Origin: Paragordius varius
Lineage: Eukaryota; Animalia; Nematomorpha
Assembly: GCA_964247055.1 (NCBI GenBank)
Contig: OZ176057.1
Location: 310,001 to 374,000, forward strand
Reading direction: 5' to 3'
DNA: 64,000 bases
Shown here piece after piece: positions 446 through 46,000 of the stretch. A model generated the notes under the pieces. The model was given only the letters and a program-made list of their open reading frames with translations. It ran no database searches and was not told where the DNA came from. Position 1 is the first letter of the stretch. Every line of letters starts with the position of its first letter. A program made the position numbers and the translations under genes.

Positions 446-3400
446 CCAGTAATACAGATATCTCCATGGTATCCAACATTGTTAATCAAATCAAGTTCAG
501 AATCATTATTTAAGCAATCATTTATATAATTTTGTTGGTTTAGTAGTTGGATAACTTTGCGTTTATGTTCCGTAAAGGTATTTATTAATCCCTCATTCAA
601 ACCCTTTAAAGAAATGTATTGCGTTGACGTGATAGCACTTGAATGCAAACAAGGCAGGTTAGCATTTTGAGATTCGCGAATAGCAAAACCTAAGTAAAAA
701 TTAACATTGAAATGGCAAAATAAAATTATTAATAATAAAACTTATCTCCCTTGTTTATAGATTAATTTCGAAAAATTTGCGCAAAACTAGATAAGAGATT
801 AAAGCACAAATAATAAAATTTTAAAGTCTAAAGTTAATATAGAACTGTAATATAAAAATTATATAAGGTTGTCAATTTTAGTTATGAGATTAGCCAAATT
901 CATTTGCCCTTATTTGATTTAGCAAATTACTGACTCTAAACAAAAAATAATTTTGGGATAATGCAATCTATTATGCTTTAAATTAAGGATGTATGATTAA
1001 ACATAATTTTCCCTTTACTATATTTTAAGCCTTAGCTCTCCAAATTTTACTTTAAAACGATTAATTTTAATATGTTAGGTTGAAAATTATAACCAAAATA
1101 AAATAATCAATAATACAGGTAAAATACTTTTTGCAGTTTCATAATGCGAATCTTGGATATGAATAGAAACGTTATAACACAAATATTCTTCTTCCGTTAA
1201 AATAGATAATTTAAAGTTGTGTCGTTTGTCTGTAAAAAAAAACATTCAACAAAATGAAATCATCGTAAAGTAAAGACATTATATATAAAAATTGTCTATT
1301 AAATAACTTTTTTAAAATGTCAAAAAATTTATTTTAATCATATCAAAATTATTTAATTTATATTATTATAATTAAATTTTATACCTGATATAGCATTTTT
1401 GTCTCGAGAAGACTGTTGAATCATAATAGGTGACAATTTATAATCCAAAATTTTGGATGACACGTCCAAAATTTTTAAAATTTTTATGGCACCTGTCGAT
1501 TTTTGCAATTCACGGGGCGCATACGTTAAATAAGCGATCGTAAGGGTGTATTTATCATTAAAGCCCTCATCTTCGATATGTGAATTACTATCTTTGAATC
1601 CAATATTTTTGGGTAAGCCCCCGACAAAAGTTAAAAGACACCTTGAACAATCAGTTTCTTCTAATGGCCTATAAGTAATAAAAATGATATAAATAAAATT
1701 AAATTAAGCGCAGAGTTAACATAAAAGGTAGAGTAAATACAAAATTATAAATAATAGAAATAAAAAACTACTTATATTTTATTATAAAACAATATTTTTG
1801 ACATAAAAATTTTCCTATATAACATGGCAAACAATTTACATCTTTATTGTTTTAGCAATTCAAATTAGAGATCGTAGAAGGCTGTCTAAAAAAATAGAAA
1901 AATCCTTTAATTTTTATGTTTTGTCCTTAAAATAAAAAGGCAATATTGTTTAAACCCTTTTTCGGGTATATGTCTAGAATCAAATTACACGCCTTATATC
2001 TCAACCTTTATGGAATTATAGTTAAAATTTGTATTTCTTACATTTTAGTGAATTTTATTTTTCAATTAATTATAACAAAAATTTTTAGATAAAAGCGATA
2101 TAAAGAGAGTATTTAGTTTTATATAAAAGACAGATAAGGTAGCTGTATATACATAAAATTAATTGACTTACTTGATGAGAGGATATGTTCGTAACTTTGA
2201 CATTGGGTAAATATCAGGAGTACCTTCACAAAAGTATCAAGAAAACATATTAAACATCATAAAAAATTTAAAATGAAAATTTAAAAAAAGCTATATACAC
2301 ATACCAAAAGGCCATATCGGACCATATTGTTGGAGATGCGTAGTACTAAGATTTATTAAAGGAAAATTATTCGTTTGATAAATCCATTTAAGAGAATTCG
2401 AATTTGGATTAGCTTTGCATTCCTCGATGTTGAGTTGTTTAAGCAAAATGTCGTCAATTAAATCACCCGAAGTCGAAATGCAATCCTCCCTTCGCGTTGA
2501 TAATATGTCATCTTTTTTTAACAAAGTTTCATCTTTACTCAATTTACGTAAACTTTCGTAAAAATTAGATTCTTGACAATTCCTTGTTTTTCCTGCAAAC
2601 CAAACATTTAAGGAACCTTTTGCACTGACGGTCATGAAGGAATTTAAACTGTAAAAAGTTGGAGCAAATGAAACCAGATCCTAAATAAAATGAATATATT
2701 GAAAAAAACGGCTTTTTCATTTATATCGAATGAAAGCCTTGAAATTTATAAATCTTATTTTTATCATATATAATATAGGAATATTGTATGTTAAAAGAAA
2801 TGGATTTATCGCGATTAATATAATAAAAATATAGAAATCCTTATATCTTATTTTTAATTTTAATTCCATATACAAATGTTAACATATAAACTGTAAATTG
2901 CCAGAAAATTAATCATAACCCATTAATACCATTTTTATTATAAAAAACACTGTAAAATGAGATTAGAACAATAATTCGATTTCGACTTATAACGTAAAAA
3001 CTGACATTAATATAAAAACCGCATTTAATAATTTTTAGAGGTATTCATAAGGCATATTATTTATTTTTAAACAAAAATATTAAAATTAATTATAGTTATA
3101 AACGAATTCAAATATATAATTATATTTTATGGTTTTTTTAAAAAAGGATTTTGGAATAGTTAAGATAGGTAATTTTAAATATTTCATTTATAAGATTAAA
3201 TATTATTGAAATAATTTTTTAATATTATACAGTAAAATATGTAATTATCCGTACGAATTTTTTAACTAACGGACATAATTTTTTTATAAGAGACAGAGTG
3301 TTAAAATCAAAAGATTATAATTTTTAATTGGCGGACAAATTTTTTATTATACGGACAAATTTTTTTTTAACGGACAAATTTTTTTTTATACGGACAAATT

Positions 3401-6400
3401 TTCGATTATACGGACAAATTTTTTTTTATACGGACATAAATCCGAAATATAATAGGGTAAGAAGAGCACTTATTATATAACAATTCTCAACATTTCTGCC
3501 ACTCAAGTTTGCAATTTTTGATATTTAGTATCATTCTAACAGTAAGTCTAAAATAAAAATTATAAATCCTTGTAAGAATTTTGTATAATTTGATATTTTT
3601 GATTATGCGCCCTCTTTATCAAAATTTTACTAAATGTTTTTATTTGAAAATATACAAGTAATGCCCATTTGTAATATAAAAAAGTAATAAAAACTTAAAA
3701 TGTATACTAATATGTATTACATTGACAGTTATTATTGGACACAGATAGCTACAAACGCGCGAAGCGAGAGCATTTTTTTAATTAATATATCTTTAAAACT
3801 AATGGATGAAAATAGCTCAAACTTTGTTTAGTTGGTGATGAATGTCAAAAAAAGATAACCCAAGAAAGTTTTTGTTTGTGAAATAATTTTTTTATTCTTT
3901 TATGTCACTCAAAACAGCCATTTTTCGGTTTTTTGTTTTTTAAAAATTACCATATCATCAATAATAATTTAGGCTGATTATTTCGAAATTTAAAGATTAA
4001 ACCAACGTTTAAGGTATTATTGATCTTTTATAGCCATTTACAGTTATAACTATGCATTTTAGGATCCACTAGGTAAAATATTTATGATAGTAATAAAAAA
4101 AACCAAACCAAAAGCTTTTCCAAACATTTTTGTTTAAATTAAATACTAATATAACCCTAATAATTATATTAAAATAATTTATATGATTTTCAAATTAGTT
4201 TGTCTGTGAAAATTCTTGACTTCTTATGGGATAGAAAATTTCGACCATTTAAATCCAAATAACTTTTATATCCGATTGATATAAATGACTTATTACCATT
4301 AAGATGCAGTGTTTTGCGCTCTTTCGAATGATATAAAATACATGGTTTCATATCTAAAACTTTTAATTTTCAAAATTTCGAGTTTAATGTTAAATCGGGG
4401 CCAAAAATTATCGATAAACCTAATATTAAAAAAATATTGAATGCTAAACCAATTCTCTTTTCAGATATACTAATTATGTACATTTACAAGAATGGCAGTT
4501 AAATAAAGTTAAAATTTGTTTTCTAGTGTAATATTGATAAATAATAACTCTTTGAATTCTAGTCGGCTAAATGTTTACTTTGTATTTTAGAAGCTTTAAA
4601 ATTATAACATAGCAATTGATTTTCACCGACTTAAGAATAAACCATTTTTTATTTAATGTTATTTATTATATTAAATGAATAGGATTTAATAAATATCGCA
4701 TTTAACTAAGGCAAAATATTATTTCATGCATTATTAACACCAATCATACTGTCATCTATTTGTAAAATTTTAAAAAACCTTATCATAACTATATTCATTT
4801 CAAAGAAACTTTTTTACTACTGAAAAAATAATAATCCAATTTTTCATTATATTAATCTTATTTTAACAATGTTTCCAATCTTATAATAAGGTTTAATCGA
4901 AAACAATAGTCTAATGGGCTTCTACACTGACTGTATTTTTAGATTATGTATCATATCAACTCTCTCTATTATATTGTTAGGTGGGACAACTTTCAATTTA
5001 CGACAAGATGGGACTCTTCTTAATATTAAACATCTACCGCATAAGCTCAATAAGCAGACGAGTAAATACTAATCGTCTGCTTTTAACATCAATTATAACT
5101 GCAATATAATGTAATAGAGAAAATAATTTATTAAAATAATATGAAAATAACATCAATATAAATAAATAGTAAAAAAATAAATAATGGTGAAAAAAATAAA
5201 AACACTAATAAATGCCTTTAAAAATTTTTATGTGCGAAAACAGTTACTGATTAAGCCTATGGATCGCAATAAATTAGAACGGGAACAAGTTTTACAGTTT
5301 TTTTACAGTAATGAAGAGATTTCCAACTATTAAATATATGCCTGCGGTTGAAATATAAAATATTTGATGATGATTTATAATATAATATTTTAATCATCCC
5401 ATACATTATAAATAATGTCTATACACCGTATTATCTAAATAAGAAAATGATATTAGCTATGAAAAAATAGATCCAACTTAAATGATTCACAACAAAAATC
5501 ATATGAATTTTCAGGTAATAAATTTAATTTTTTTAAACAAACATTATTTAATATTTTATCTACATGTTCATAATATTTACTTAAATCCTTATTATAAAAT
5601 ATTTTAGAAACTTCTTTTATATTTTTATCCATATTTAAATCTTTCTTATTAAGAGCTCGTAATTTGTGTTTAAATTCATGGAAAATACACTCAATAGGAT
5701 TTAATTGAGGTGAATATGGTGGTAAAAAAATTAAATTTTCGAATTCTTTATTTCGAGAATAACGATGAATAGGGGCATTATCCAAAATTATATAGGATGT
5801 TAAAGGTATTATTTTAAAACATTCCTGTAAAAAATGATATATATCATCCCCATTGTATGGGTCAGATTTATATTCATATTTTATCATTCCATTTATTCCA
5901 ATCATAGCCAAATAGTTTATATTTTTACCTCTTGGCTTACGTTTAATCGTAGGAAATTCTCCCTTTTTACACCAACAATATAAATAAAGACTGTAATCAT
6001 TGATTCCAGTCTCATCCATATAATATATGTCGCTGTGCAAAAACTGTAAAACTTCCCACGCATAAGTATACCTATGCTCTATTATTTCTATTTTATTGCG
6101 ATTTATAGGCTCAATCTGAGCCTGTTTTCTTACAAAAGAATTTTTTTTAAGCATTTATATAATGTAGTTTTTGATATTTTTTATGAATAAGGAATAGAAT
6201 CTAAAATTTCATCAATTGTGATATTATTATTTTCATTTAAAATATTTTCTATGGCTTCCTTTAATTTACAATCATCATATTTTGGCTTGCGGCCACTTTT
6301 TTTAGGTGGGATGTGAAGGCCGACGTTCAATCGCCTGCGATATTTATAAATTGTTGATCTGGACATTTTTAAAATGTTCATATTGTCCGTCATAGTATTA

Positions 6401-9400
6401 TTCGAAGTGGACGGATTACTGAAAAGGCTCTTAGCAATTTCATTCTTTTCATTTGTCCAACTTCCTCTGCCTTAACCAAATATTCACAAAGAATTTATTA
6501 TTTTAGATAGTTGAATAAACAATTCTTATATATAACTGGTAATTTATTATATTATTTTATTAAATTTTTTAAAAGTTATTGATTCAATCGGAATAATGTA
6601 ACTAGAATACCTTTATTAAAATAAGGCGGAAGAATCAATTTACTTATGTAACTATATTAAAATTTGCAAGATTTTCATATAAATATGTTAAATATAATAT
6701 CTAGACTATTCCCACTTGAAATAATTATTTTAAATAACGTCGATCTCAAACCTTGATATAAGTTTTAAGAATATATGCAAAAATATTTAAAGGAAATTAT
6801 GTCGCATAAAAACACAAAAAGATACTAGAGCTAGCACAATGGTATTATGGAATATAATATAATTTGAAATGTATATACGTTTTCTTTGACGAATCGTATC
6901 ATCTTGGTTGTTTTCTGAACATATAGATGAAGATGGCGATGACGGTGAGAATGATGGTGAGCGTATAATTGAACGATTTTCTGTACAATCATCATAGAAA
7001 TCTAAAGGTGAAATTAAATTTTACCATAGGTGTGATCCATTAATAATAATTACTATAGGCCGAATAAAGAGTATTAAATATAGATATTGTTAAAGTATAT
7101 TAAAAGTGATTAAATTAAGATGAAAAGACTATGGGTACACGTAAAAAAATAATCAATAGTTAATAAATTATTATAAATTAAAATTGATTATATTTAAGAT
7201 GAAAAGATTATGGGTACAAAAAAGAACAAAATAATTAATTAATAAAATTAAAAAATACATATATTTACCGTATGCATATTATTGGTAGTCAATTTACTTT
7301 ATTTTTTGCTCCCGTTTGGTGATAGTTGCGTATTGATTAAAACATGAAATAGTTAAATTTACATATTTTTTTATCTTACAACCATAATTAAATATTTAAA
7401 TACGGCCAAATTTATTTTATATTATAAACTAGTGTATTATCATAAGTCAAATATAAAAATGGAATTAGGTACCGAATATGAGTTCATTTTAATGAACCCC
7501 CCTGTCAAAAAACCTAGTACACATATCAAATTTCGAAATTTTTTAATTTTATTAATTAATTATTTTGTTCTTTTTTGTAATAATCTTTTCATCTTAAATA
7601 TAATCAATTTTAATTTATAATAATTTATTAACTATTGATTATTTTTTTACGTGTACCCATAGTCTTTTCATCTTAATTTAATCACTTTTAATATACTTTA
7701 ACAATATCTATATTTAATACTCTTTATTCGGCCTATAGTAATTATTATTAATGGATCACACCTATGGTAAAATTTAATTTCACCTTTAGATTTCTATGAT
7801 GATTGTACAGAAAATCGTTCAATTATACGCTCACCATCATTCTCACCGTCATCGCCATCTTCATCTATATGTTCAGAAAACAACCAAGATGATACGATTC
7901 GTCAAAGAAAACGTATATACATTTCAAATTATATTATATTCCATAATACCATTGTGCTAGCTCTAGTATCTTTTTGTGTTTTTATGCGACATAATTTCCT
8001 TTAAATATTTTTGCATATATTCTTAAAACTTATATCAAGGTTTGAGATCGACGTTATTTAAAATAATTATTTCAAGTGGGAATAGTCTAGATATTATATT
8101 TAACATATTTATATGAAAATCTTGCAAATTTTAATATAGTTACATAAGTAAATTGATTCTTCCGCCTTATTTTAATAAAGGTATTCTAGTTACATTATTC
8201 CGATTGAATCAATAACTTTTAAAAAATTTAATAAAATAATATAATAAATTACCAGTTATATATAAGAATTGTTTATTCAACTATCTAAAATAATAAATTC
8301 TTTGTGAATATTTGGTTAAGGCAGAGGAAGTTGGACAAATGAAAAGAATGAAATTGCTAAGAGCCTTTTCAGTAATCCGTCCACTTCGAATAATACTATG
8401 ACGGACAATATGAACATTTTAAAAATGTCCAGATCAACAATTTATAAATATCGCAGGCGATTGAACGTCGGCCTTCACATCCCACCTAAAAAAAGTGGCC
8501 GCAAGCCAAAATATGATGATTGTAAATTAAAGGAAGCCATAGAAAATATTTTAAATGAAAATAATAATATCACAATTGATGAAATTTTAGATTCTATTCC
8601 TTATTCATAAAAAATATCAAAAACTACATTATATAAATGCTTAAAAAAAATTCTTTTGTAAGAAAACAGGCTCAGATTGAGCCTATAAATCGCAATAAAA
8701 TAGAAATAATAGAGCATAGGTATACTTATGCGTGGGAAGTTTTACAGTTTTTGCACAGCGACATATATTATATGGATGAGACTGGAATCAATGATTACAG
8801 TCTTTATTTATATTGTTGGTGTAAAAAGGGAGAATTTCCTACGATTAAACGTAAGCCAAGAGGTAAAAATATAAACTATTTGGCTATGATTGGAATAAAT
8901 GGAATGATAAAATATGAATATAAATCTGACCCATACAATGGGGATGATATATATCATTTTTTACAGGAATGTTTTAAAATAATACCTTTAACATCCTATA
9001 TAATTTTGGATAATGCCCCTATTCATCGTTATTCTCGAAATAAAGAATTCGAAAATTTAATTTTTTTACCACCATATTCACCTCAATTAAATCCTATTGA
9101 GTGTATTTTCCATGAATTTAAACACAAATTACGAGCTCTTAATAAGAAAGATTTAAATATGGATAAAAATATAAAAGAAGTTTCTAAAATATTTTATAAT
9201 AAGGATTTAAGTAAATATTATGAACATGTAGATAAAATATTAAATAATGTTTGTTTAAAAAAATTAAATTTATTACCTGAAAATTCATATGATTTTTGTT
9301 GTGAATCATTTAAGTTGGATCTATTTTTTCATAGCTAATATCATTTTCTTATTTAGATAATACGGTGTATAGACATTATTTATAATGTATGGGATGATTA

Positions 9401-12400
9401 AAATATTATATTATAAATCATCATCAAATATTTTATATTTCAACCGCAGGCATATATTTAATAGTTGGAAATCTCTTCATTACTGTAAAAAAACTGTAAA
9501 ACTTGTTCCCGTTCTAATTTATTGCGATCCATAGGCTTAATCAGTAACTGTTTTCGCACATAAAAATTTTTAAAGGCATTTATTAGTGTTTTTATTTTTT
9601 TCACCATTATTTATTTTTTTACTATTTATTTATATTGATGTTATTTTCATATTATTTTAATAAATTATTTTCTCTATTACATTATATTGCAGTTATAATT
9701 GATGTTAAAAGCAGACGATTAGTATTTACTCGTCTGCTTATTGAGCTTATGCGGTAGATGTTTAATATTAAGAAGAGTCCCATCTTGTCGTAAATTGAAA
9801 GTTGTCCCACCTAACAATATAATAGAGAGAGTTGATATGATACATAATCTAAAAATACAGTCAGTGTAGAAGCCCATTAGACTATTGTTTTCGATTAAAC
9901 CTTATTATAAGATTGGAAACATTGTTAAAATAAGATTAATATAATGAAAAATTGGATTATTATTTTTTCAGTAGTAAAAAAGTTTCTTTGAAATGAATAT
10001 AGTTATGATAAGGTTTTTTAAAATTTTACAAATAGATGACAGTATGATTGGTGTTAATAATGCATGAAATAATATTTTGCCTTAGTTAAATGCGATATTT
10101 ATTAAATCCTATTCATTTAATATAATAAATAACATTAAATAAAAAATGGTTTATTCTTAAGTCGGTGAAAATCAATTGCTATGTTATAATTTTAAAGCTT
10201 CTAAAATACAAAGTAAACATTTAGCCGACTAGAATTCAAAGAGTTATTATTTATCAATATTACACTAGAAAACAAATTTTAACTTTATTTAACTGCCATT
10301 CTTGTAAATGTACATAATTAGTATATCTGAAAAGAGAATTGGTTTAGCATTCAATATTTTTTTAATATTAGGTTTATCGATAATTTTTGGCCCCGATTTA
10401 ACATTAAACTCGAAATTTCGAAAATTAAAAGTTTTAGATATGAAACCATGTATTTTATATCATTCGAAAGAGCGCAAAACACTGCATCTGAATGGTAATA
10501 AGTCATTTATATCAATCGGATATAAAAGTTATTTGGATTTAAATGGTCGAAATTTTCTATCCCATAAGAAGTCAAGAATTTTCACAGACAAACTAATTTG
10601 AAAATCATATAAATTATTTTAATATAATTATTAGGGTTATATTAGTATTTAATTTAAACAAAAATGTTTGGAAAAGCTTTTGGTTTGCTTTTTTTTATTA
10701 CTATCATAAATATTTTACCTAGTGGATCCTAAAATGCATAGTTATAACTGTAAATGGCTATAAAAGATAAATATTACCTTAAACGTTGGTTTAATCTTTA
10801 AAATTTCGAAATAATCAGCCTAAATTATTATTGATGAGATGGTAATTTTTAAAAAGAATAAAAAAATTATTTCACAAACAAAAACTTTCTTGTGTTATCT
10901 TTTTTGGACATTCATCACCATCTAAACAAAGTTTAAGCTATTTTCATCCATTAGTTTTAAAGATATATTAATTAAAAAAAATGTCGCTTCGCGCGTTTGT
11001 AGCTATTCTGTGTCCAATAATAACTGTCGATGTAATACATATTAGTATACATTTTAAGTTTTTATTACTTTTTTATATTACAATGGGCATTACTTGTATA
11101 TTTTGAAATAAAAAAATTTTTTAGTAAAATTTTGATAAAGAGGGCGCATAATCAAAAATATCAAATTATACAAAATTCTTACAAGGATTTATAATTTTTA
11201 TTTTAGACTTACTGTTAGAATGATACTAAATATCAAAAATTGCAAACTTGAGTGGCAGAAATGTTGAGAATTGTTATATAATAAGTGCTCTTCTTACCCT
11301 ATTATATTTCGGATTTATGTCCGTATAAAAAAAAATTTGTCCGTATAATCGAAAATTTGTCCGTATAAAAAAAAATTTGTCCGTTAAAAAAAAATTTGTC
11401 CGTATAATAAAAAATTTGTCCGCCAATTAAAAATTATAATCTTTTGATTTTAACACTCTGTCTCTTATAAAAAAATTATGTCCGTTAGTTAAAAAATTCG
11501 TACGGATAATTACATATTTTACTGTAATATTTTAAAGGATTCTAATATTGTTTAGTTAAAGTTTATTATAAAATAGGGAGGAGCCAACTTGATATACATT
11601 GAATATGGTGTTTTTAAAGACAACCAGTCATACTTTTTAACAATATAATTTTTATGGTAAAATATATAATTTGTTTTCTCAACTTATTTAATTTTACAAC
11701 GCAAAACAATAGGTTAAATTATTAAAACAAGGGTAACTTTATATCTAAAAATTTCTCTCTATATAAAAAAGTATACCTCTGAAAAGATATAATGTGTCGG
11801 TAATTGAATTTTAGTGTCCAAAAATATGAGGAGAGAATTACAAACTATGATGAGATAAGGATATTGGTAATGATCACGAGAATCTTTCATCCAATCAAAA
11901 TTTGCATCACTTTCCAGGAATTGCTCACAAGACTTTTCCTTGTCGTAATAATGCAAAAACTCCATTTGTGTTATAGATAGGCAACCAGTTGTTGTTTTGT
12001 GATGAATCATTTGTTTAAGTTTACTATTTAAAAAATAAAATTCGGAAATTATGCTCAAAATGTAAATTATATCTATGTAAAACATTTAACAATTATTGTT
12101 ATATATACTTGCCCGACTATAAAGGAGTAATATTATTGGGTGAAATAATGTTTGAAAAAAAATTAATTTTAAGCATGTCTTTTATGTGAATACTATTTCA
12201 TATCAAATAAAACCCTATTTTTCCTGTTGTGTACATGAGTTAAAGCTAAAAGGCGCATGGGTTTTCTATAACAACCATATTTTATTAACGCTAATTTTAT
12301 TAATATAACCAATAATTTAGATGTAAATTGGCATCTCAACGATTGTAATTAACTAGTTTATATAGGAAAGGTTTTATATTTTTACGTTTTGTCCGTACAA

Positions 12401-14483
12401 TTTTAATTATTACACTGTTAATAAATGCAAGCTTATTCATTTTAAAGCAAAAAAAAGGTAGAAAGTATAAGTTTAACTCATTGTGTGAAAAATCCATAAT
12501 TTTGAGGAGAGATATGGTATGTATGTTTGACTGTTTATTAATATCATCATCAGAATTATTTTGGGTTAGATTTTTAGCGGAAGTGGTGTTTATAATATGC
12601 AAATCCCCGTTAGAATCCGCCACATATAAAAAAGTCGACCCAGGTGGTATCTTAGAGTCATGAAATGCTAAGCTGCTTGTAATTTTTGGGCAACAATTAT
12701 TCTTAGGAAAAGCAACTGCATTTTTACCATATCGATATTGGATTCGAGATTTTGGTTCAGGTTTTTCCATTAAATCCAATTGATTAACAACTTTCCTAGG
12801 GAAAAAAACAATCATATTTTAGAGTTGCACAGAGTGCGGAAAAAAGTGTTTATAAAAATGAAGAATCAAGTGATAACATACTAAAAAAAGAGTTATTTTT
12901 ATTTTATTAACCAAAAATAAAAAATGGCATTTTTTTCGCACAATAGGTCACATAAAAATAACACTAGACAAAAAAAACTTTAACGAAATCCTATTTGTAA
13001 ATATAAATTCATAAATATACTCAATTCAATGTTTTTAATTAGATTTTTATATTTTTAGAGGGTCATTTAAAGAGACCAGGATATAAGCTAATATTATGCG
13101 GTAAAAGATTATCGCATGAAATTTACCCAATATATCGCGTTAAAAGATAATATTTAGCTTATATGATAACAAATCTTGATATTTTATTCAAAAACCAAAG
13201 TATAGCTGCAAAAATTCAAAATTGTAATTAATTAATGATTTCCATGGTATAAAAACATGCATTGTCTCAAATCCTTTGATTTATAGAGTTTTTATAACCA
13301 ATGTTGGGAGACGATCTAAAGATCATACACATCAATACATATTCTCATGCAATCAAACACTATCCAATCATTTAATTCTTAGATAAAAACACTAATTTTC
13401 ACTATAGCTGGGCAATCGACAGTTGTATATGGAATAAAATAAACAAAGTTATATATTAGAAAGGGAGAAATCGTTTATTCAGTATTTTGTTGTTTTTTTC
13501 CATACATTACTGTAAATATTCAGGTATATAACAAAATATGAATTAAAACTTTTAAACCCTAAATTAAAACCGAGTCAATCATTTTTTTGTGCATTTTATA
13601 GGAAAAATATTTATATATATAATTAAAATCATTTTTGGGGTGATTTCGGGTAAACTTAAATATATGATACAATAAAAAGTGAAATTATACGGACAAAACG
13701 TAAAAATATAAAGGAATATACTTTTTATAATGGAAAACATATACTTTATTTAAGCCATTTAGTTACAATAGTAAAATATAAAAATGATTATGTTAGATAT
13801 ATATATATATCTCTATTCCAGATTTTAATATATAAAACAATGAGTTATATTGATATAAATCAATATTTAAAAAATATGGTTGCCTTTTAGAAAAAAATAT
13901 TTGTCATTATATTTTTACATTTTGTCCGTATAATTTCAGTTTTACTGTAATAAAAATTAAAATGTTTTACCGCATAATAGCAAATAGAAAATTTTATATG
14001 TGGGATTTTTAATAAATTAATAAATGTAGTACTTTATAAACCCTCTAAAAATTGTAAAATTTTCATCGAAATATTTTGCTCTTAAACCATCTTTATGGAG
14101 TATTTTGGTTATAAAAAAATTTTGTTGACACGCCTTTCTCTAATTAAATAACCTAATGTGCGACGAAAATGCGTTTTTTGGGGTTATATAATTTAAGAAA
14201 AAAAAATTTTTTTATAAAAAAGATAGCCTTTTGCGAAAAAGCAATGCATCTGCAATTCCTAATTATATATGTTTCACAGTTGTAATGCTATTATAAAAAG
14301 CGAATAAATATTGTTTACTTTACGAAACTCTTTTTAATATTTGCGTGTTGTCTTAAAAATTATATTTTATTTCTTGTTCCAACTATTAGGTCAATTCAAT
14401 TTAATTGTTAAATTATAATATATAAATTCGAATTAAGTTGTTAGTACAATTATAAAAATGAAACATAAAAAGTAATAAATAGT

Positions 14484-14541
<58 letters not shown>

Positions 14542-15742
14542 GAAAAAAAACGGATATTTTTTGTAATTTTTGATAATCCATTCCATTACTGATATAATTT
14601 AATTAGTTTAATTAGAATGCTTGAAAATATGGATGTTTATGCTAAACTTATCTTAAATTAAAACATATTTAACCTCAAATCGTATATATATTCGATGAAA
14701 AAACAAAATACCTGATGGGCACATTAAAAATATTCAACAATTTCAAGATTGGGCACTCGTTGGGATTTTCAGAATGGCGATCAAGAACACAAATCTCATA
14801 ATGATAAATGCAGTTGTTTGTTCCAACAATAAAAACTTCATTCTGTTCATTATTATAATAAAATATAAAATTTTGCATTGGCTTATATTACAGTTCGAAT
14901 TCATCCTTGAACAATTTAAATTCACCATCACCCTCGAACAATTCAAATACCCACTAAAATTAAATTATGTGTTATCGAACCTTAATATAACTCATTATTA
15001 ATATGAAACATATCTTTATGGCATAGTTTATTGTTTTTTCAGTATTTTAAAACAATATTTTATTTTTAAAAAATATTAAAAATATAGGCAATTTTTAATC
15101 TTAAAAAATATATAATTATTTAAGGGTAAATTTAAATTGTAAATGGCTTGTTGTTATTTTTATCTTTTCATTATAATTATGTTACTGGCAAATTTAAATG
15201 AAAAAAAAACTAATGCATTTTTTACAACGTATTAATTATAATGTGATTTATGGAATTGGTTTATAAAGGAGTTATGTCTAATAATCATTCAGAATATGTC
15301 GTGGAAAAAAGCAATTCTTATCAAAGACAGCAAATTTTTTTATATTAAAAAAGGAATTGAAATATTAAGATACCATTTTATCCAAAAAATCAATTTAGGT
15401 CTGTTTAAAATTAAAATAAAACTTATTCCAAACATAAACAAAATAACTCTTTAAAAAATGTAGATCTTCTAACGTTAAAAAATTCACATATATAAATTAT
15501 TAAACAATTGCAATGTTATAATTATAACCTTTAAAGAAACTAAACAAATCATTGTTACACCAACTGAATCTGCAGGTAAATATGTTTCTATTTGACGACC
15601 ATCAAGATATCTAAAATAGTAATCAAAAAAGTTACATTCTAATAAGCCCATCTTTAGTGCCAATCACCAATAATTTTGCTATTGCATCATATTCAAAAGC
15701 AGATGGTTTTAATGGATAACCGACATCGCCATCAAAATTAAA
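446..15742 (-). CDS. Lethal(2) giant larvae / tomosyn (LLGL/STXBP5) family WD40 protein, multi-exon; both ends unresolved
   Basis: Phase-compatible GT-AG exons: 15742-15636, 15610-15529, 14842-14712, 12795-12478, 12023-11777, 2680-2305, 2223-2172, 1668-1385, 1229-1128, 689-446(?). Family motifs occur in the correct order: GYPLKPSAFEYDAIAKLLVIGTKDGLIRI (cf. GFPYQPSALAFDPVQKILAVGT), FLYVADSNGDLHIIN (cf. WLYVGTERGNIHIVN), YGPIWP, LLTFVGGLPK (cf. FSGGMPR), LSILTEEEY (cf. LAVLLEEEL), LPCLHSSAITS (cf. LAPLHSSAITC), ICITG (cf. LLLTGHE). Lgl versus tomosyn cannot be decided without the C-terminus. Confidence 0.85.
3331..3440 (+). repeat. Subterminal array, 6 x ~20 bp (CGGACAAAT core)
   Basis: CGGACA at 3332, 3352, 3371, 3391, 3411 and 3431. 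Confidence 0.9.
4970..5360 (+). pseudogene. Decayed, internally deleted paralog of the element's own transposase, in opposite orientation (mirror at ~9431-9821, -)
   Basis: AATGCCTTTAAAAATTTTTATGTGCGAAAACAGTTACTGATTAAGCCTATGGATCGCAATAAATTAGAA...GTTTTACAGTTTTTTTACAG aligns to the transposase's TGCTTAAAAAAAATTCTTTTGTAAGAAAACAGGCTCAGATTGAGCCTATAAATCGCAATAAAATAGAA...GTTTTACAGTTTTTGCACAG. Similarity upstream of ~5190 is weaker. Confidence 0.7.
5453..6393 (-). pseudogene. IS630/Tc1-family transposase, left copy, split into HTH ORF (6181-6393) and DDE ORF (5453-6154)
   Basis: MSRSTIYKY...KKSGRKPK (HTH and linker); YMDETG, ILDNAPIH, FLPPYSPQLNPIE (DDE). An in-frame TAA and a -1 frame offset at an A8 run separate the two parts. 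Confidence 0.9.
6787..7040 (-). CDS. Mirror copy of the candidate 76-aa passenger gene
   Basis: Reverse complement of 7751-8004; intron 7002-7024. Confidence 0.55.
7751..8004 (+). CDS. Candidate 76-aa orphan passenger protein (Ser/Pro-rich, basic RQRKR, hydrophobic C-tail)
   Basis: Exon 7751-7766 (ATG GAT CAC ACC TAT G), 23-nt intron 7767-7789 (gtaaaatttaatttcacctttag), exon 7790-8004. Product: MDHTYDFYDDCTENRSIIRSPSFSPSSPSSSICSENNQDDTIRQRKRIYISNYIIFHNTIVLALVSFCVFMRHNFL*. Confidence 0.55.
8398..9338 (+). pseudogene. IS630/Tc1-family transposase, right copy (ORFs 8398-8610 and 8637-9338)
   Basis: Proteins identical to the left copy, with the same TAA (8608-8610) and TT-A8-TTC (8641-8653). 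Confidence 0.9.
11314..11423 (-). repeat. Mirror subterminal array, 6 x ~20 bp
   Basis: Reverse complement of 3331-3440. Confidence 0.9.
13670..13947. mobile_element. 278-bp MITE (CAGTAAAA family), TA-flanked
   Basis: Left TA|CAATAAAAAGTGAAATTATACGGACAAAACGTAAAAATATA; right end reverse-complements to CAGTAAAACTGAAATTATACGGACAAAATGTAAAAATATA, followed by TA. Confidence 0.85.
14487..14534. repeat. (AT)n microsatellite, ~24 units
   Basis: Seen directly. Confidence 0.95.
14881..15147. mobile_element. Degenerate MITE related to 61-293
   Basis: Repeated TTCAAATTCACCCT-like motifs at left; AAGGGTAAATTTAAATTGTAAATGGC at right. Confidence 0.5.
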
Positions 15743-16169
15743 CTGAAAATCGTGGGGATTTTCGTTTTGATGTGTTTTTTGTTGTTTTAATACCTTTAAC
15801 AGCTGAAGCATGGGTAACGTGCATGTATGGTAATATTTCCACAGGACGAAAATTTAATATTGTACAAAAATTTAATATTAGAATATTTTGTCCTATGAAT
15901 GTTAAAATATAGTTAAAAGAATAAATCATATTAAACATCCACTTGCATTTTATACCACCATTTTTGAAAAGATATTAATACATTAACGTAGCATTATTAT
16001 ATTATTGAAACTATAGTTTGCACTCCTAAATAAACATATTATTTCAACTACAATAGCTAGGCTACTTAATTTTCTGCTATATTTATGCTGTTCAATTTAT
16101 CAGTAATTAGCAGGTAGATTTTCTATACCATACTTTTAATTATCTAATAACGGTAAAAATAACCTCTAT

Positions 16170-18135
16170 CAATGGTACTCAAACCGCACCCGCGGGTCGC
16201 ATGCGGCTATAATTGAAATTGCCCTATGTCCATATTGATACATAAATTTATTTTTATTTATGAATTTTATAAATACACATAAACGAATTTTTGCTTATAT
16301 CAATAATAATTTATTTTCTTTAGATCTATTTCGTAATTTCTACTTCTTACCCAATTTGAAATGTAGCCTACATAAAATGATTTCATAATTTTGGCACACG
16401 TTTCTATTTTTTTCCTATTTTTAAATTTCTATTGGATTATTTTTTTGTATTTCAGCAAGCTTTTAACCCAACCTGCATATACATATTCTTTTCATTGCCA
16501 TCCCTCATTTTTTATAACTCATTCCCATAATATATTTTTCAAATCAACAAAATTTCGACCTGTTTTATAGCATAATTCACACTATATTCCTATTTTTTGC
16601 AAAAATTACATAATATTTAAACATAAATTCAAAGGAAGACAGCTAATGCTAAAAAAACGTAAATTATCCGATGAAAATCGCTTTTTAAAATGGAATAGGA
16701 TGAAAAAAATTTTTCGTTTTTAAAAAAAATATTGTTACCTGCCTTATATTCAAGGACAACATAATTATAAATTGGAATATTGAAAGTCATTTTACAATCC
16801 ATCATTCTCATAAATTACCAGAATATCATACGGAAAGAAACGAAAAAATATAAAAAATTAAGGAATTATACCAGATTATTTTTATAGCTTTCTTCCAGGA
16901 AAAGCTGTAACATTAGCTTCGTATGAAATTCACTATATTTTAGGCAAAAATATGAAACCGTTTACTGATTCCCAACTAATTAAAGAATGTCTAATAAGTG
17001 GTATCATTTAATAATGGGATATCTTTGAAAATTGGTTTCGATCTGCACAGATGGCTGTCCCTTTATTAAACGAAGGATTTATCCCCTTTCGAAAACAAAT
17101 ATTTGAAAAATATTTATTCAACAGCAAAACTTGGTTTCGCGTGTGGATGAATCACTCATTTCAGTAATTAAAATTGATGGATATAGTTAACCTAATCCGG
17201 GAGAATTCAACAGCCGTAAATTCAAAAAAACCTTCTGAAAGATATGCACAGTGAGTTTGATGATATTTTGTACACCGCTGTGAGATGGCTAAGCCTTAGC
17301 TAAGTATTGAATAGATTTTTTGTTTAAGACAATTCTATTATTTATAAAAGATAACATATTGATGAGGAATTAATAGTGACAAATGGTGGGTTTTATTAGC
17401 CTACCTTTGCAACTTTACTTATAGACTCAGTCTTAATATAAGATTTTAAGAGAGCAAAATAATAACCCAATTTGCTAATCAAATATTTACTTTTGAAGAA
17501 AAATTAATAATGTATAAACGAGATTTTATAAATAAAACACTCCTATATTTCCAACAGTTAAAACGATTCATTAAGAAAATATGGAATTTACTGCGGAGAT
17601 AAATTTTCCTTTAGCATTTTTATCTAATATGAAATTCAGATTTGAAGAAAAAATATTTAATATTCCTTAAAACTCGTAGAAAATCCATGGTATGGATATA
17701 TCCAATATTAAGCAACTGTAGTGGCTTTGATCAGATGCATATCATCGAAGAATTCGTAGATTTTAAAAATGATTCCGATTCAGAGGCTATATTCAAGGAG
17801 AATCGTAGCGAAAAAGGATGCATGGTTTTGGCAAGATGTACCAAATAAATGTGCTCAAGTTATCCTAACTGTTTTTCTCCCAAGTTACCCATGGACGGCA
17901 TCTTCAAAAATAAGGTATCTCAAGAATACATACAGAAATCGCTTAACCGATGATCATATGGACGACGTATTAAGAATGGTCTGTCATGAGGCGAAACCAA
18001 TGTCAAAAATTATTGGTTAATATTAAAATAAATGTTGTTATTAAAATATTTTATTTTTTAAACCAAATGGTGCAAAACGAGTTTTTAACTGGATTTACAT
18101 GCGATCCGCAAAAAATTAATTGATTAGTATCTTTA
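16170..18135 (+). mobile_element. Decayed hAT element (Buster/Charlie/SPIN, GTF2IRD2-like transposase)
   Basis: Charlie-like 5' end CAATGGTACTCAAACCGCACCCGCGGGTCGCATGCGGC. Fragments ASYEIHYILGKNMKPFTDSQLIKECL, SICTDGCP, VRWLS and SKIRYLKNTYRNRLTDDHMDDVLRM (dimerisation domain); many stops and frameshifts. Confidence 0.85.
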
Positions 18136-39551: not shown

Positions 39552-40731
39552 AATTAGACCTTTTATTAATGTTATTAAATATTTATTAAATAATCTAATT
39601 TAACCTATTTATATTAGGTGGATATAAATAAAATGAAATTTCGAAATAACTCTCAATGTATTGAAGAACAATGTAAAAAAGTTCATATGTTACGTGTTTC
39701 TTAAACACATTTCCATGCATCACAGCTATTTTTGGTTTCCAAAAAAAACCCTTTTGAACAATATTAATTTTGAGTTTATAAAAATAAATTTAATTTATTT
39801 GTATCTATAATATGTGCAAAAAATTATAAGATTTGTTCGCTAATTCGTTTATTGTAACACCAATGACCCAACAAACAGAATTCGTGAAGTTCTAAAGTTT
39901 AATCACCATGTTTTTAGTAACGCCCAATCAAAATACAAAATTTGTGGTTATTTTTGGACATAAATTATTATATAATTTAAATTATTTATTATCATTATAT
40001 ATAGTTTATCTATTTTTAACTGAATATGTGCACTTACCGAAATTTATTTTAGAGGATTGCGAAAAAATATTTTTCAAATACAATTTTACCAATTTTCCGA
40101 TATCGTTGATAATCAATAAACTGATCGCGATAGGCTAAGAGAATTTTAAAAAGTTATATCCTAGTTTATTAGAGTACTAGTTAAGGTTACATTAGTTATT
40201 ATGGTTCATACATAATTTACTGCATATTAATTTCATGGTATCAAAAATGTGGTATCATAACGATTTCAGTTGAAATGCCTTATAATTTGTTTATTTATTT
40301 ACAAATTAATTATAATTTTTTATTTTTAACTCGATATTTCATTAATGATGTAGAAATAAATTTTACAATTTAATTAATTTATACGTGCCTAAACTATTTA
40401 CGTTTTAAAAAATGTGAAAATATATAAATATCTTAAGGTAAGATAACAAATATACAGTGCAAAGTATAAAATAGAGGGTTACAGCTTCCAAAAAAGTATA
40501 ACTGTAGAAAAATCTATATATACTACGATCATTTATGTTAATTGGATTTATTACCATTTGAGGGTTCAAAATAGATATTTAATTAACTATCAACATTTTT
40601 GTAGGTTTTTTTAGATGTTTTTCTTTAGATACTATAAAACATTATTAATGACGGTAGTATATTGCAATTTTTATGAATTTTGAAGCAATGTGGTGGGATA
40701 TAAGGAGAAATACGGCTTTTTTAGATTGTAT

Positions 40732-42557
40732 GCGGTTTTATTTGGTTGCAAAGCAATATGGTTGGACATATTTTGCGGTTTTTTAATTGTAAAGCATATC
40801 GACGGTTATTTATAGGATATGGTAGAGGTGGGTAAAGGACAACTTTGTCGGTTTTGTAGATTTTATAAAATATGCTTTTAAATTAGCAGGGTGGCGGTTT
40901 TATTTGGTTGCAAAGCAATATGGTTGGACATATTTTGCGGTTAATTGTAAAGCATATCGACGGTTATTTATAGGATATGGTAGAGGTGGGTAAAGGACAA
41001 CTTTGTCGGTTTTGTAGATTTTATAAAATATGCTTTTAAATTAGCAGGGTGGCGGTTTTATTTGGTTGCAAAGCAATATGGTTGGACATATTTTGCGGTT
41101 TTTTAATTGTAAAGCATATCGACGGTTATTTATAGGATATGGTAGAGGTGGGTAAAGGACAACTTTGTCGGTTTTGTAGATTTTATAAAATATTGTTTTA
41201 AATTAGGGGGTGGCGGTTTTATTTGATTGTAAAGCAATATGGTTGGACATATTTTGCGGTTTTTTAATTGTAAAGCATATCGACGGTTATTTATAGGATA
41301 TGGTAGAGGTGGGTAAAGGACAACTTTGTCGGTTTTGTAGATTTTATAAAATATGCTTTTAAATTAGCAGGGTGGCGGTTTTATTTGGTTGCAAAGCAAT
41401 ATGGTTGGACATATTTTGCGGTTTTTTAATTGTAAAGCATATCGACGGTTATTTATAGGATATGGTAGAGGTGGGTAAAGGACAACTTTGTCGGTTTTGT
41501 AGATTTTATAAAATATTGTTTTAAATTAGGGGGTGGCGGTTTTATTTGATTGTAAAGCAATATGGTTGGACATATTTTGCGGTTTTTTAATTGTAAAGCA
41601 TATCGACGGTTATTTATAGGATATGGTAGAGGTGGGTAAAGGACAACTTTGTCGGTTTTGTAGATTTTATAAAATATTGTTTTAAATTAGGGGGGTGGCG
41701 GTTTTATTTGATTGTAAAGCAATATGGTTGGACATATTTTGCGGTTTTTTAATTGTAAAGCATATCGACGGTTATTTATAGGATATGGTAGAAGTGGGTA
41801 AAAGACAACTTTGTCGGTTTTGTAGATTTTATAAAATATTGTTTTTTAGGGGGGGTGGCGGTTTTATTTGATTGTAAAGCAATATGGTTGGACATATTTT
41901 GCGGTTTTTTAATTGTAAAGCATATCGACGGTTATTTATAGGATATGGTAGAGGTGGGTAAAGGACAACTTTGTCGGTTTTGTAGATTTTATAAAATATT
42001 GTTTTAAATTAGGGGGTGGCGGTTTTATTTGATTGTAAAGCAATATGGTTGGACATATTTTGCGGTTTTTTAATTGTAAAGCATATCGACGGTTATTTAT
42101 AGGATATGGTAGAGGTGGGTAAAGGACAACTTTGTCGGTTTTGTAGATTTTATAAAATATTGTTTTAAATTAGCGGGTGGCGGTTTTATTTGATTGTAAA
42201 GCAATATGGTTGGACATATTTTGCGGTTTTTTAATTGTAAAGCATATCGACGGTTATTAGGATATGGTAGAGGTGGGTAAAGGACAACTTTGTCGGTTTT
42301 GTAGATTTTATAAAATATTCTTTTAAATTTGGGGGGTTGCGGTTTTATTTGGTTGCAAAGCAATATGGTTGGACATATTTTGCGGTTTTTTAATTGTAAA
42401 GCATATCGACGGTTATTAGGATATGGTAGAGGTGGGTAAAGGACAACTTTGTCGGTTTTGTAGATTTTATAAAAATTTCTTTATAATTAAAAGGGTGGCC
42501 GTTTTATTTGGTTGCAAAGCAATATGGTTGGACATATTTTGCGGTTTTTTAATTGTA
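40732..42557. repeat. Tandem array of a ~161-bp unit, ~11.4 copies
   Basis: Unit starts at 40732, 40894, 41052, 41213, 41375, 41536, 41698, 41858, 42019, 42180, 42339 and 42498. Confidence 0.97.
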
Positions 42558-43088
42558 TTACGGCATACCGAGGGTTGTTATTTATATATTGTAGCTTGTA
42601 AGATAGAAGGTCAAATTTGGCAGTTTTAGATTGTTATAAAAGCATTGGTATTGCTTGAAACAAGTAGATGGTGGCGGATTTTATTTAATAAATCAGAGGC
42701 ATTTTTGAGCATATAAAGGAAGAGATTGTTCAACCTATTTTGAGTATTTCCAACTTTAATAAAAGAGGCCAGCTTGATTTACATTATGTAAATTTCATCG
42801 CAAATTTGATTTTACTAGGCTATTCTTTAGACGTATTTTAAAAACGATCTATCCACTACTGAGAAAAAATGAAGGCACATATAAAATCATTTCTTTCGAT
42901 TTGTTAGCTATATTCATCCATTTGACAATTTTATGATACAAAATTAATTTAAAAACCTCAATTAGTTGCTCAAATATTCCCAGATATTCCATACTACTAG
43001 ATCTATTGAGATGCTATTAAAAATGGATTTTTTAGTAAAGTAGAATTTGATTTATACAATCATGCTGGCAAAGTAAGTGACACGATTG

Positions 43089-46000
43089 TTATTGACATGG
43101 ATTAGTTGCAACGATGTAATCAACTTTACGCTTTAGCATCTCCGGTGTCCATGCTTGTTCTAAAAAAGGGTGCTACCAAAAAAATATTTGTTTATATATT
43201 TTAGTGTAGAACATATATAATTAGTAACCCAGTGAATTAATAAATCTATGAGATATGCATACCCATAACAGGTCATTGGCCGACCATCTATCAATGGCCT
43301 CTTTATGCAAACACTTTTGCAAAAAATCGGTTAAAGTTTTAGAGATGGATTTTGGCAAAGTGGGCGTCCCTGTTGCCACTATTTTTTTTAGGATCTAACA
43401 AATAATGATGGTAAAATGATTATATTTTATCTAATATTAATACCTGACTCTGGTTCAAGCCAGCGTACGGAAGAGTGCCTTTAACTAATTTTATTATTAT
43501 AATTCCTGTGGACCAAATATCGACTTTGCAATTGTAGGAAGCTCGACAGATCATGTCGTAGGCCATATAGGATGGCGTTCCGACCATGACTGGAGCGCAA
43601 TTAGTTGTATGGAAGCATGCTAGGCCAAAGTCAACTAATTAATAGATTATTTTGTAAATATATTTTCTATATCATCATATTTATTAAATATTAGGAAACG
43701 ATGCAAACTGCTAATTTAATGGAGAAAAATTGTAAATCATTTAAAAGATATTTGCTGTATTTTTATTTATTCATGAACGGCCCCTTTTTTTTATTTTTTA
43801 TTTTTATACATCAAAAATAAATTTGTAATGAAGTAAAATTACTTATTTTCACGCATCCATTCGTGTCTACGAGGATGTTGTTGCATTTCAAATCTCTGTG
43901 CATTATATTATTGGCATGAATATATTGAAGGCCCATTAATGTCTACAAATAAAACACCGTGAATGAAATGATTTATAATATTTTAAGGCTAGCTATAGAA
44001 AGGGTACAATACCAAGTGCTATTATTTTTCTGCATACTAATTTATGTCATGAGTTTTATGGTAAAAAGATAGACTTTCAAAAAATTAACTGTCATGATCA
44101 AAATGGCGGTGTTGCCAACTATAAACACAAAGGGTAAAAACTAAAAAAGATTTTTTTAAGAAAGCCATATTTCTTTAAACCTTAATTTTTCCGATAACTA
44201 TTTAAAAGATATCTTATAAATTTATGCCTATATATAGAACTTTGCAGAAATTATGTTTAAAAAAGTATAGCGTCTTTAAAAAACTGTCTTTTATTACATT
44301 TTGTCTGTGTTACCGTTATTATTATGAAATATTTTCATTTTTCATTAATTTAAACGATAATAGAAAATCAATTTATTCTTATCCACGATTACTTATTTAT
44401 TACTTTGCAATTCCGCCAAAATCCAAAAACATAATAAGAACTACCTGTTTGACGATTCCTGCGACCATTGGTTCTTTAAGTTTATATTGAGCTATTTTAT
44501 CTAACGTGACTCCATTGATATATTCCAAAATGATCTGTTAATTATTAAGTATTGAAGATATTATTGAAAAACTGTCAAGAAAATTGCAAATTACTAAAAT
44601 GACATACCATAAGTGTTGACGAAGTTATTTTAGCCCCTAAATATTGTACAATATTAGGATGTCTGAGGTTGGATAGCATAAATAATTCGTTTATATGAAA
44701 GTTTCTTAGAACTGAATTTTCTAGATTTTGCTTTTTTATAGCAATACTGTGACCATCTGCATTAGTTGCCAAGAAAACAGAACCGAAGCCTCTATATTAT
44801 ATAAATATATGTTTGCTTTCCAATTGCCAATATGTAAAAGACAAATATGTTTAGATAACCATACTTTTCAACACTTGATTTTATATATTAATAACTTACA
44901 TTTCCATTTCTTGCAAAAATGATGATTATTAACACTTCCTTACCCTCAAATATTTATGGACAATTACATTTTGGTATAATTAAAAACTCCAGTGCTTATA
45001 CTTTAAATAAACTAATGTGAAAGTTATCAAACATTGTTCTCCTGTTTATAAAATTGGTGTAAAAAAATAGATAAATGGTGACGATCAAGTTTGAGAGGAG
45101 GTTTTTTTTACTATTTTTATTATAATGTAAAAATATCTTTTAAAGTCTTTGCCCGAAAAAATGTTAGCGAAACCACATTTTAATTTTGGCTTAATACCTT
45201 AATTATTAAAGATTTCATATTTTCGTTAGAGATATAAAACCACATTAAGAGGTAATGATTATCAAAATATCAAGAATTAAATTAGTATGTATGTCTTTTA
45301 GAAAATATTTATCTGTTAATTTTAACGTTTTTATGTAAAATTTCATTTTATAATGCAATTTTAATATGAAGATCTTACCCTTTCCCAATCTGTTTGCCCA
45401 TTTTATAACCTGAAGAGGGAATGTCAGCCTATAAAATAAAATGAATACATAATTTTATAGATGTTTATATTTATATTTTTTAAAAATACATTTTGTAATA
45501 TAATTGTTTATAAAACTTGTACTTACATTGGAATTATTGGGTTCGTTTTGATGCTCGTTATCTAAAAGGATGATATGTTAGTTGAATATATAAATATTGG
45601 GATAAAGTTTCTTATGATAAAATAGAATTATTCGTAGAGATATTTCAAACTATTTTAGCAAGAAGTAAAACAAAAGATGATGGCATAATTATATTCCCAC
45701 TCTAATCTGATGGAGAGGGGATTTCGATTTAATAATAAGTATATCACACATTGTCTCAAAATATAACCTGATAGTAATCAAGATTTATATGTCCTTTTGA
45801 CTTTGATTTCAAGTGATTTATGTAAGATATTTAAGTTTTGGTGGTATAACTGCTCCATATCATTAAATAGCGATTTCGCACACAATTATAAAATTTTGGT
45901 TGATAAAATGGTTCATTCCAAAAAATATCAATATCATAATTAAATATTAAAAGCAAAATAATGTTTTGGAAATTTTAATTGGAAGATATGCCTCTGAAAG

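Follow-up and report, generated by a model that had tools for sequence, protein, structure and literature searches.

Several Tc1/mariner transposons, among them Tc3, Bari, Minos, Paris and the elements of the inverted repeat/direct repeat (IR/DR) type of Sleeping Beauty, carry long terminal inverted repeats that bear shorter repeats of their own, and in these elements such repeat arrays bind the transposase. We analysed a palindromic transposon of 8,295 bp that lies in a stretch of 64,000 nucleotides of contig OZ176057.1 (assembly GCA_964247055.1, Paragordius varius; positions 310,001 to 374,000), hereafter called the window, to which all coordinates below refer. The element resembles the long-repeat Tc1/mariner transposons in its TA target, CAGT-type termini, DDE transposase and the short direct repeats in its terminal repeats (for Bari, PMC4877112). 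The helix-turn-helix N-terminus of their transposases has a putative counterpart here. The terminal repeats of those elements, in contrast, measure tens to a few hundred base pairs and surround one gene, whereas here they measure 4 kb and each contains a whole gene.

Very long inverted arms are shared with Galileo and the Drosophila Foldback-like elements. The inverted repeats of Galileo extend inward and have recruited the end of the transposase open reading frame (ORF) as well as secondary insertions into both repeats (PMC4168063, PMC3573991). Galileo, however, belongs to the P superfamily, and its repeats reach up to ~1.2 kb and include only a piece of the ORF. As in Foldback-like elements, the inverted arms make up nearly the whole of the present element (97%), but the Foldback arms are built of tandem subrepeats, and only a 105-bp array and one 79-bp duplication are found in each arm here. 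The Mu killer locus of maize contains two copies of one terminal repeat with an inverted duplication of the transposase, and read-through transcription of an adjacent gene can give rise to a hairpin RNA of ~4 kb there (PMC3440606). The duplicated single end and the inverted transposase duplication are common to both, whereas Mu killer belongs to the Mutator superfamily, has a partial duplication and is a single locus known for silencing rather than for moving. The composite transposons of Tn10/Tn5 type also have two inverted transposase-bearing units whose outward-facing ends act together; their units, unlike the arms described here, keep both of their own ends. Searches of the open-access literature yielded no Tc1/mariner element whose repeats each enclose the complete gene, and for myxozoans and dicyemids they yielded no account of elements of this kind. 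The element is real and unusual, and yet it is an extreme form of known things, namely foldback elements, inverted-repeat extension and Mu killer. It is probably a genuine, non-autonomous member of a multi-copy family of IS630/Tc1/mariner type in which an inverted copy replaces the 5′ end, and which most likely was inserted as a finished unit and mobilised in trans.

Structure and position of the palindromic element

The element spans 3230–11524 with edges reading TA/CAGT...ACTG/TA. The left arm was placed at 3230–7256 (4,027 bp) and the inverted right arm at 7538–11524 (3,987 bp) by a repeat search, by blastn and by MAFFT alignment to the reverse complement, and the arms account for 8,014 of the 8,295 bp around a central spacer of 281 bp. 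The edges, arm lengths, spacer and 97% share given by the original prediction were confirmed. The repeat search reported an inverted pair of 3,257 nt at 99% and a terminal pair of 432 nt at 98%, and the identity of the arms was 99.6% in the inner 3.3 kb and 97.6% in the outer 0.67 kb.

The left end reads TA followed by CAGTAAAATATG..., and the right end ...CATATTTTACTG followed by TA. The 28-nt terminus CAGTAAAATATGTAATTATCCGTACG, mirrored at the right, is present at only these two sites in the window and was not obtained in 100 shuffles. The left terminal region (3230–3450, plus strand) consists of this terminus followed by 20-bp direct repeats, and it is identical to the right terminal region (11304–11524, minus strand), which is its mirror image. 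Each terminal region contains six 20-bp direct repeats of TACGGACAAATTTTTTTT, the left array spanning 105 bp (3332–3436); by analogy with the arrays of long-repeat Tc1/mariner elements, these repeats are likely candidates for transposase binding sites. The dinucleotide TA just outside the left end (3228–3229, context ...TTATA/CAGT) is matched by TA outside the right end (11525–11526, context ACTG/TAATA), and the two are a putative target-site duplication.

Neither the terminus nor an array of the 20-bp CGGACAAA repeat was found at the inner arm ends (near 7256 and 7538). A permissive blastn search of the outer 240 bp against 6400–8400 gave only AT-rich noise, above which no match like a terminal inverted repeat stood out. 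The presence of two copies of one end without inner ends shows that this is a single element and not two adjacent complete ones, as had been proposed. The spacer (7257–7537), which forms the loop of the palindrome, has no other copy in the window. A decayed palindrome centre was considered for it and rejected because its self-complementarity was not above that of shuffled sequences. A relic of the lost end was also considered: one copy of the repeat motif with two mismatches lies at 7401–7414, with a chance of ~0.01 for the stretch, and gives at most a hint, weakened by the finding that the number of such matches outside the ends equals the chance prediction for the window.

From the centre outward, each arm contains ~785 bp of non-coding DNA, the transposase gene, an inverted transposase fragment, ~1 kb of non-coding DNA and the terminal region. 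The two transposase genes diverge, each being read from the centre outward. A 79-bp tandem duplication of 1.9 copies (7099–7246) marks the inner end of the left arm and is mirrored in the right arm. The inverted fragment at 5220–5312 (plus strand) is a degenerate copy of transposase residues 4–42 (tblastn 44% identity, E 0.003; 77% DNA identity) that stands tail-to-tail with the main left-arm gene, and its mirror copy lies at 9479–9571.

The whole element sits in one intron of a host gene on the minus strand (2681–11776; 9,096 nt), with GT at 11776–11775 and AG at 2682–2681, and this intron would measure ~800 nt without the insert. On this strand the upstream exon ends with ...TTTTCAGAG, followed by GTATAC at 11776, and the downstream exon starts after ...TTATTTAG at 2680. 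The intron is in phase 0 at both ends, where it separates complete codons of open frames, so that the earlier statement that the flanks are exons of one gene was borne out: a single host intron is bordered by in-frame exons. An upstream exon of the gene, on the same strand, bears a weak resemblance to residues 10–46 of LLGL2, its N-terminus (E 0.008).

The transposase gene and its lesions

The right-arm gene comprises an N-terminal, putative helix-turn-helix part (8320–8607, plus strand), ended by TAA at 8608–8610, and a DDE catalytic part of 233 aa (8637–9338, plus strand), which is one frame off the N-terminal part. The left-arm copy (5453–6471, minus strand), with its DDE part at 5453–6154 and its putative DNA-binding part at 6184–6471, is identical. 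The catalytic part matched Pfam PF13358 (DDE_3) with an E value of 2.9e-22, and D47, D125 and E155 were invariant in a collinear alignment with eight relatives. The distance from the second D (D125) to E (E155) is 29 residues here as against 34 in the eight relatives, and the DD34E spacing of the Tc1 family proper is absent. When a collection of 5.8 billion proteins was searched, the closest proteins were 30–35% identical and nothing exceeded 35%, which together with the shorter spacing sets this transposase apart from its Tc1/mariner relatives. The closest among the named matches were 'Tc3 transposase' entries of the microsporidian Dictyocoela muelleri. A PDB sequence search with the DDE part gave no match.

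The N-terminal part showed sub-threshold matches to the helix-turn-helix families HTH_7 (E 0.008) and HTH_Tnp_IS630 (E 0.057). Its comparison by hhalign with the first helix-turn-helix (HTH1) of the relatives gave E 0.0023, albeit with a probability of just 12%. The possibility that the N-terminal ORF is a diverged tandem duplicate of HTH2-linker-D1, raised by a BLAST match (E 0.04), was rejected because hhalign favoured a collinear HTH1-linker-HTH2 reading and the N-terminal ORF has no similarity to the DDE part. The catalytic domain, the TA flanks and the CAGT-type termini agree with the IS630/Tc1/mariner superfamily, and the Tc1/mariner type that the original prediction had assigned is supported by the same three features.

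The stop codon TAA breaks the transposase within the putative second helix-turn-helix, and the N-terminal and catalytic frames meet in a run of eight A residues at 8643–8650 (mirror 6142–6149). Exactly the same two lesions are present in both arms. In contigs of other copies obtained from independent runs, the A run is one base shorter (in all contigs of sample X1 and in a sixth of the depth of sample X2), and neither length restores the frame of the transposase. A tiny intron that would remove both the TAA and the frame change was rejected, as the stretch 8560–8656 lacks a GT; the sole GT..AG candidate (8657–8680, 24 nt) was rejected too, because it would delete residues conserved in the relatives. 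A ciliate genetic code in which TAA is read as Q was also rejected because the host exons and the other genes of the window are open in the standard code; furthermore, the window encodes collagens, and the frame change would persist anyway.

Judged from these reading frames, both transposase copies are pseudogenes, and the element as it stands is predicted to be unable to make its own enzyme. The single uninterrupted transposase frame of an autonomous Tc1/mariner element was not found. By its sequence, this is an element of IS630/Tc1/mariner type that belongs neither to the DD34E family proper nor to the autonomous elements. The claim that the terminal inverted repeats contain the transposase itself therefore needs to be qualified: each arm does hold a collinear full-length gene, but the gene is a pseudogene with identical lesions on the two sides.

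Other copies and the origin of the palindrome

The occurrence of the element in independent public data was followed in the Logan contigs of four runs, which were aligned to 2701–8700, and the summed word depth of the contigs, a rough guide and not a copy number, was taken as the measure. The single-copy flank had a depth of ~215–330 in X1 and 190–290 in X2. The transposase region reached ~20–35 times and the spacer ~7–25 times the single-copy depth; in X5, the spacer stood at ~5–7 times the flank. Taken over X1, X2 and X5 together, contigs with the spacer and its junction to the right arm stood at ~4–20 times single-copy depth, and the contigs bridge this boundary by 17–32 nt. At 7346 and 7538, for which the window gives G and A, all the contigs over the spacer carry C and T instead; these contigs thus stem from other copies. 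A deletion derivative joining 5919 to 6925 with the filler ATTC was found at 6–10 times single-copy depth in two samples, and many smaller rearrangements were seen among the contigs. This derivative lacks the 5′ half of the transposase gene and the upstream region, and has itself multiplied. Taken together, the contigs depict a family that is active or was so until recently, and whose palindromic centre, too, is multi-copy. Such a centre makes a chimera less likely and favours movement of the palindrome as such, while proving neither for the copy in the window.

Both the element and the flank were recovered from four runs that share one species label. In runs labelled otherwise, both had lower shares, with the element always exceeding the flank, as expected for a repeat in an organism of low abundance. 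In runs under five or six other organism labels, the single-copy flank was recovered at 7–37% of the sampled words (2701–8700 and 11560–16500), which indicates that DNA of the animal is present there, be it as host, cohabitant or close relative. The RNA runs listed contained next to none of the words searched.

The arms differ by 23 events: 15 substitutions, seven insertion/deletion (indel) events and one GGG indel at 7212. All but one of these events fall within the 742 bp of 3631–4372 (22 of 23; binomial p ~7e-15); one difference is a 39-bp indel at 3898–3936. No difference was found in the outer 400 bp or in 4373–7211, leaving an identical inner stretch of 2.84 kb. The events coincide with a non-coding high-copy segment of the left arm (3500–4530, mirror 10230–11250), whose summed word depth over 3500–4500 was 230,000–510,000 in two samples, corresponding to a ~1000-fold repetition in the genome. 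This segment has no copy in the window outside the element, and no nested element with ends of its own that would explain it was found in 3430–4750. At position 3832, the right arm has the majority base of the family and the left arm a private base. Conversion from other copies, local mutation or polishing with reads that stem from such copies would best account for the differences, and their confinement to a ~1000-fold segment makes them unusable as evidence that the palindrome is authentic. Over the remainder the arms are identical, reflecting a recent event or ongoing homogenisation between the arms.

As to how such a structure could arise, the 5′ end would have been replaced by an inverted copy of the upstream region, the transposase gene, ~2.2 kb of downstream DNA and the 3′ terminal repeat. 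Repair synthesis might have run from the 3′ end through the gene and past the spacer, and then have folded back or switched template onto the complementary strand. Alternatively, copying might have proceeded inward from the shared terminal repeat, as in inverted-repeat extension, and have been resolved 281 bp short of symmetry. The spacer would be the unpaired loop left over from the inversion event, and its asymmetry and lack of self-complementarity fit a single event. An origin by foldback or template switch is plausible, and arm-to-arm gene conversion extending the inverted repeat would give the same product. A Tc1/mariner transposase treats both ends of its element alike, and with equivalent ends the DNA between two inverted copies of one end would be a substrate. 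The palindrome could then have been cut out and pasted whole at an intronic TA, and the insertion of a finished palindrome would agree with the flanking TA dinucleotides, with an intron that is undisturbed and with a centre that is multi-copy. The transposase would have been broken before the arm was copied, or the arms homogenised since, and the enzyme would be supplied by another copy.

Several observations weigh against this account of a finished palindrome inserted as a unit. The bases of the window at 7346 and 7538 occur in no contig, so that the exact copy is without independent confirmation, and none of the contigs aligned spans the window copy from flank to flank. The Logan contigs are short, and the two arms are collapsed in them. 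The first 44 letters of one X5 spacer contig depart from the left-arm end, and some copies may therefore have another neighbour at this point. An exact-protein look-up, a protein search and two metagenome pattern scans returned neither a second palindromic copy nor a single-arm progenitor, and no intact transposase partner is known in the data reached. In addition, the window is 76% A+T, and TA flanks are weak evidence in DNA of such composition.

The palindrome might instead have formed on the spot and never have moved, if an ordinary short-ended element was inserted at this TA and one of its arms later overwrote the other inward from the shared terminal repeat, by gene conversion or by break repair that used the other arm as template. 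The arms are identical over their outermost 400 bp, which copying from the tips would predict, and Galileo repeats came to share insertions that had first entered one of them (PMC4168063). This explanation appears rather unlikely, as the spacer with the right-arm junction was present at several times single-copy level in three samples, suggesting copies with the same centre; the inner 2.84 kb, moreover, are identical too, which is equally consistent with one recent copying event. That the second arm is an artefact, produced by a foldback chimeric read or by a wrong assembly path through the inverted repeats, we hold to be extremely unlikely. The limits of the inversion coincide precisely with the transposon termini, each bordered by TA, a single intron with in-frame exons makes up the flanks, and the spacer is ordinary AT-rich DNA that is joined to the arm in contigs of independent runs. 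In favour of an artefact, no spanning read was seen, and the differences between the arms are restricted to a segment of very high copy number, in which they could be a product of consensus polishing. The original prediction had likewise judged a chimera improbable, and this judgement is strengthened by the spacer/right-arm junction found at several times single-copy depth in independent contigs. Its appeal to real indels between the arms carries little weight, with 22 of the 23 events in the ~1000-fold segment, where conversion or polishing may have produced them.

The structure could also be a selected hairpin device, in which read-through of the intron would yield a ~4-kb double-stranded RNA of the transposase and thereby small-RNA silencing of the family in the manner of Mu killer. 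The architecture is as in Mu killer (PMC3440606), and from its intronic position the element could be transcribed by the host promoter. The fact that the structure is explained without any function and the high copy number that the family reached regardless make such a device very unlikely.

Returning to insertion of the finished palindrome as the preferred reading, the locus represents an extreme of inverted-repeat extension in a cut-and-paste transposon, in which each 4-kb repeat contains the whole gene while the ends of a mobile element and the TA are kept. If other copies share the centre, a Tc1/mariner transposase would be able to move a perfect palindrome of several kilobases, and an animal genome to retain it, which would bear on the survival of long palindromes in replication and on the origin of foldback elements. 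That palindrome formation is a systematic property of this genome, rather than an accident of one element, is distinctly unlikely, although two causes may be conceived. Breaks made by the transposase may unusually often be repaired by hairpin-primed foldback synthesis in this lineage, or an animal with tiny introns may tolerate large intronic inserts mainly if the self-folding pre-mRNA reunites the splice sites. Among animals, the literature records introns of 21–25 nt for myxobolid myxozoans and for the dicyemid Dicyema japonicum alone (PMC13644364). The intronic insert offers a natural test of whether double-stranded RNA acts against its own family and of how a 9-kb intron is spliced in a tiny-intron animal. 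Taken singly, the case is a curiosity, and a genome-wide pattern would be the actual finding.

Neighbouring termini and other features of the window

Termini related to that of the element (CAGTAAAA..ATTATACGGACAAAA) occur in the same host gene on a miniature inverted-repeat transposable element (MITE) and on a solo end. The MITE of 280 bp (13669–13948) has TA flanks and 52-nt inverted ends, reading TA followed by CAATAAAAAGTGAAATTATACGGACAAAACG...ACTG followed by TA, and lies in another intron-like stretch of the gene. Its terminus is ~70–75% like that of the large element. The solo end (12373–12418), reading ...TTTTGTCCGTACAATTTTAATTATTACACTG followed by TT, borders an open frame of the host gene, and its complement matches the MITE at the left end (13673–13712) by 90%.

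Elsewhere in the window, two collagen sequences lie on the minus strand, a gene for a short-chain C4-like collagen at 57164–57841 and a collagen exon of the Gly-Pro-Pro type at 60868–61341. The named matches of the C4-like gene are mostly from molluscs, a brachiopod and annelids, at 26–43% identity. The two sequences identify the genome as that of an animal and give it a spiralian affinity, which, with introns of 21–25 nt, would suggest a host similar to dicyemids. The GC skew was +0.46 and +0.22 in the two 2-kb bins of 40001–44000, and stayed within ~0.1 elsewhere except for −0.19 at 60001–62000.

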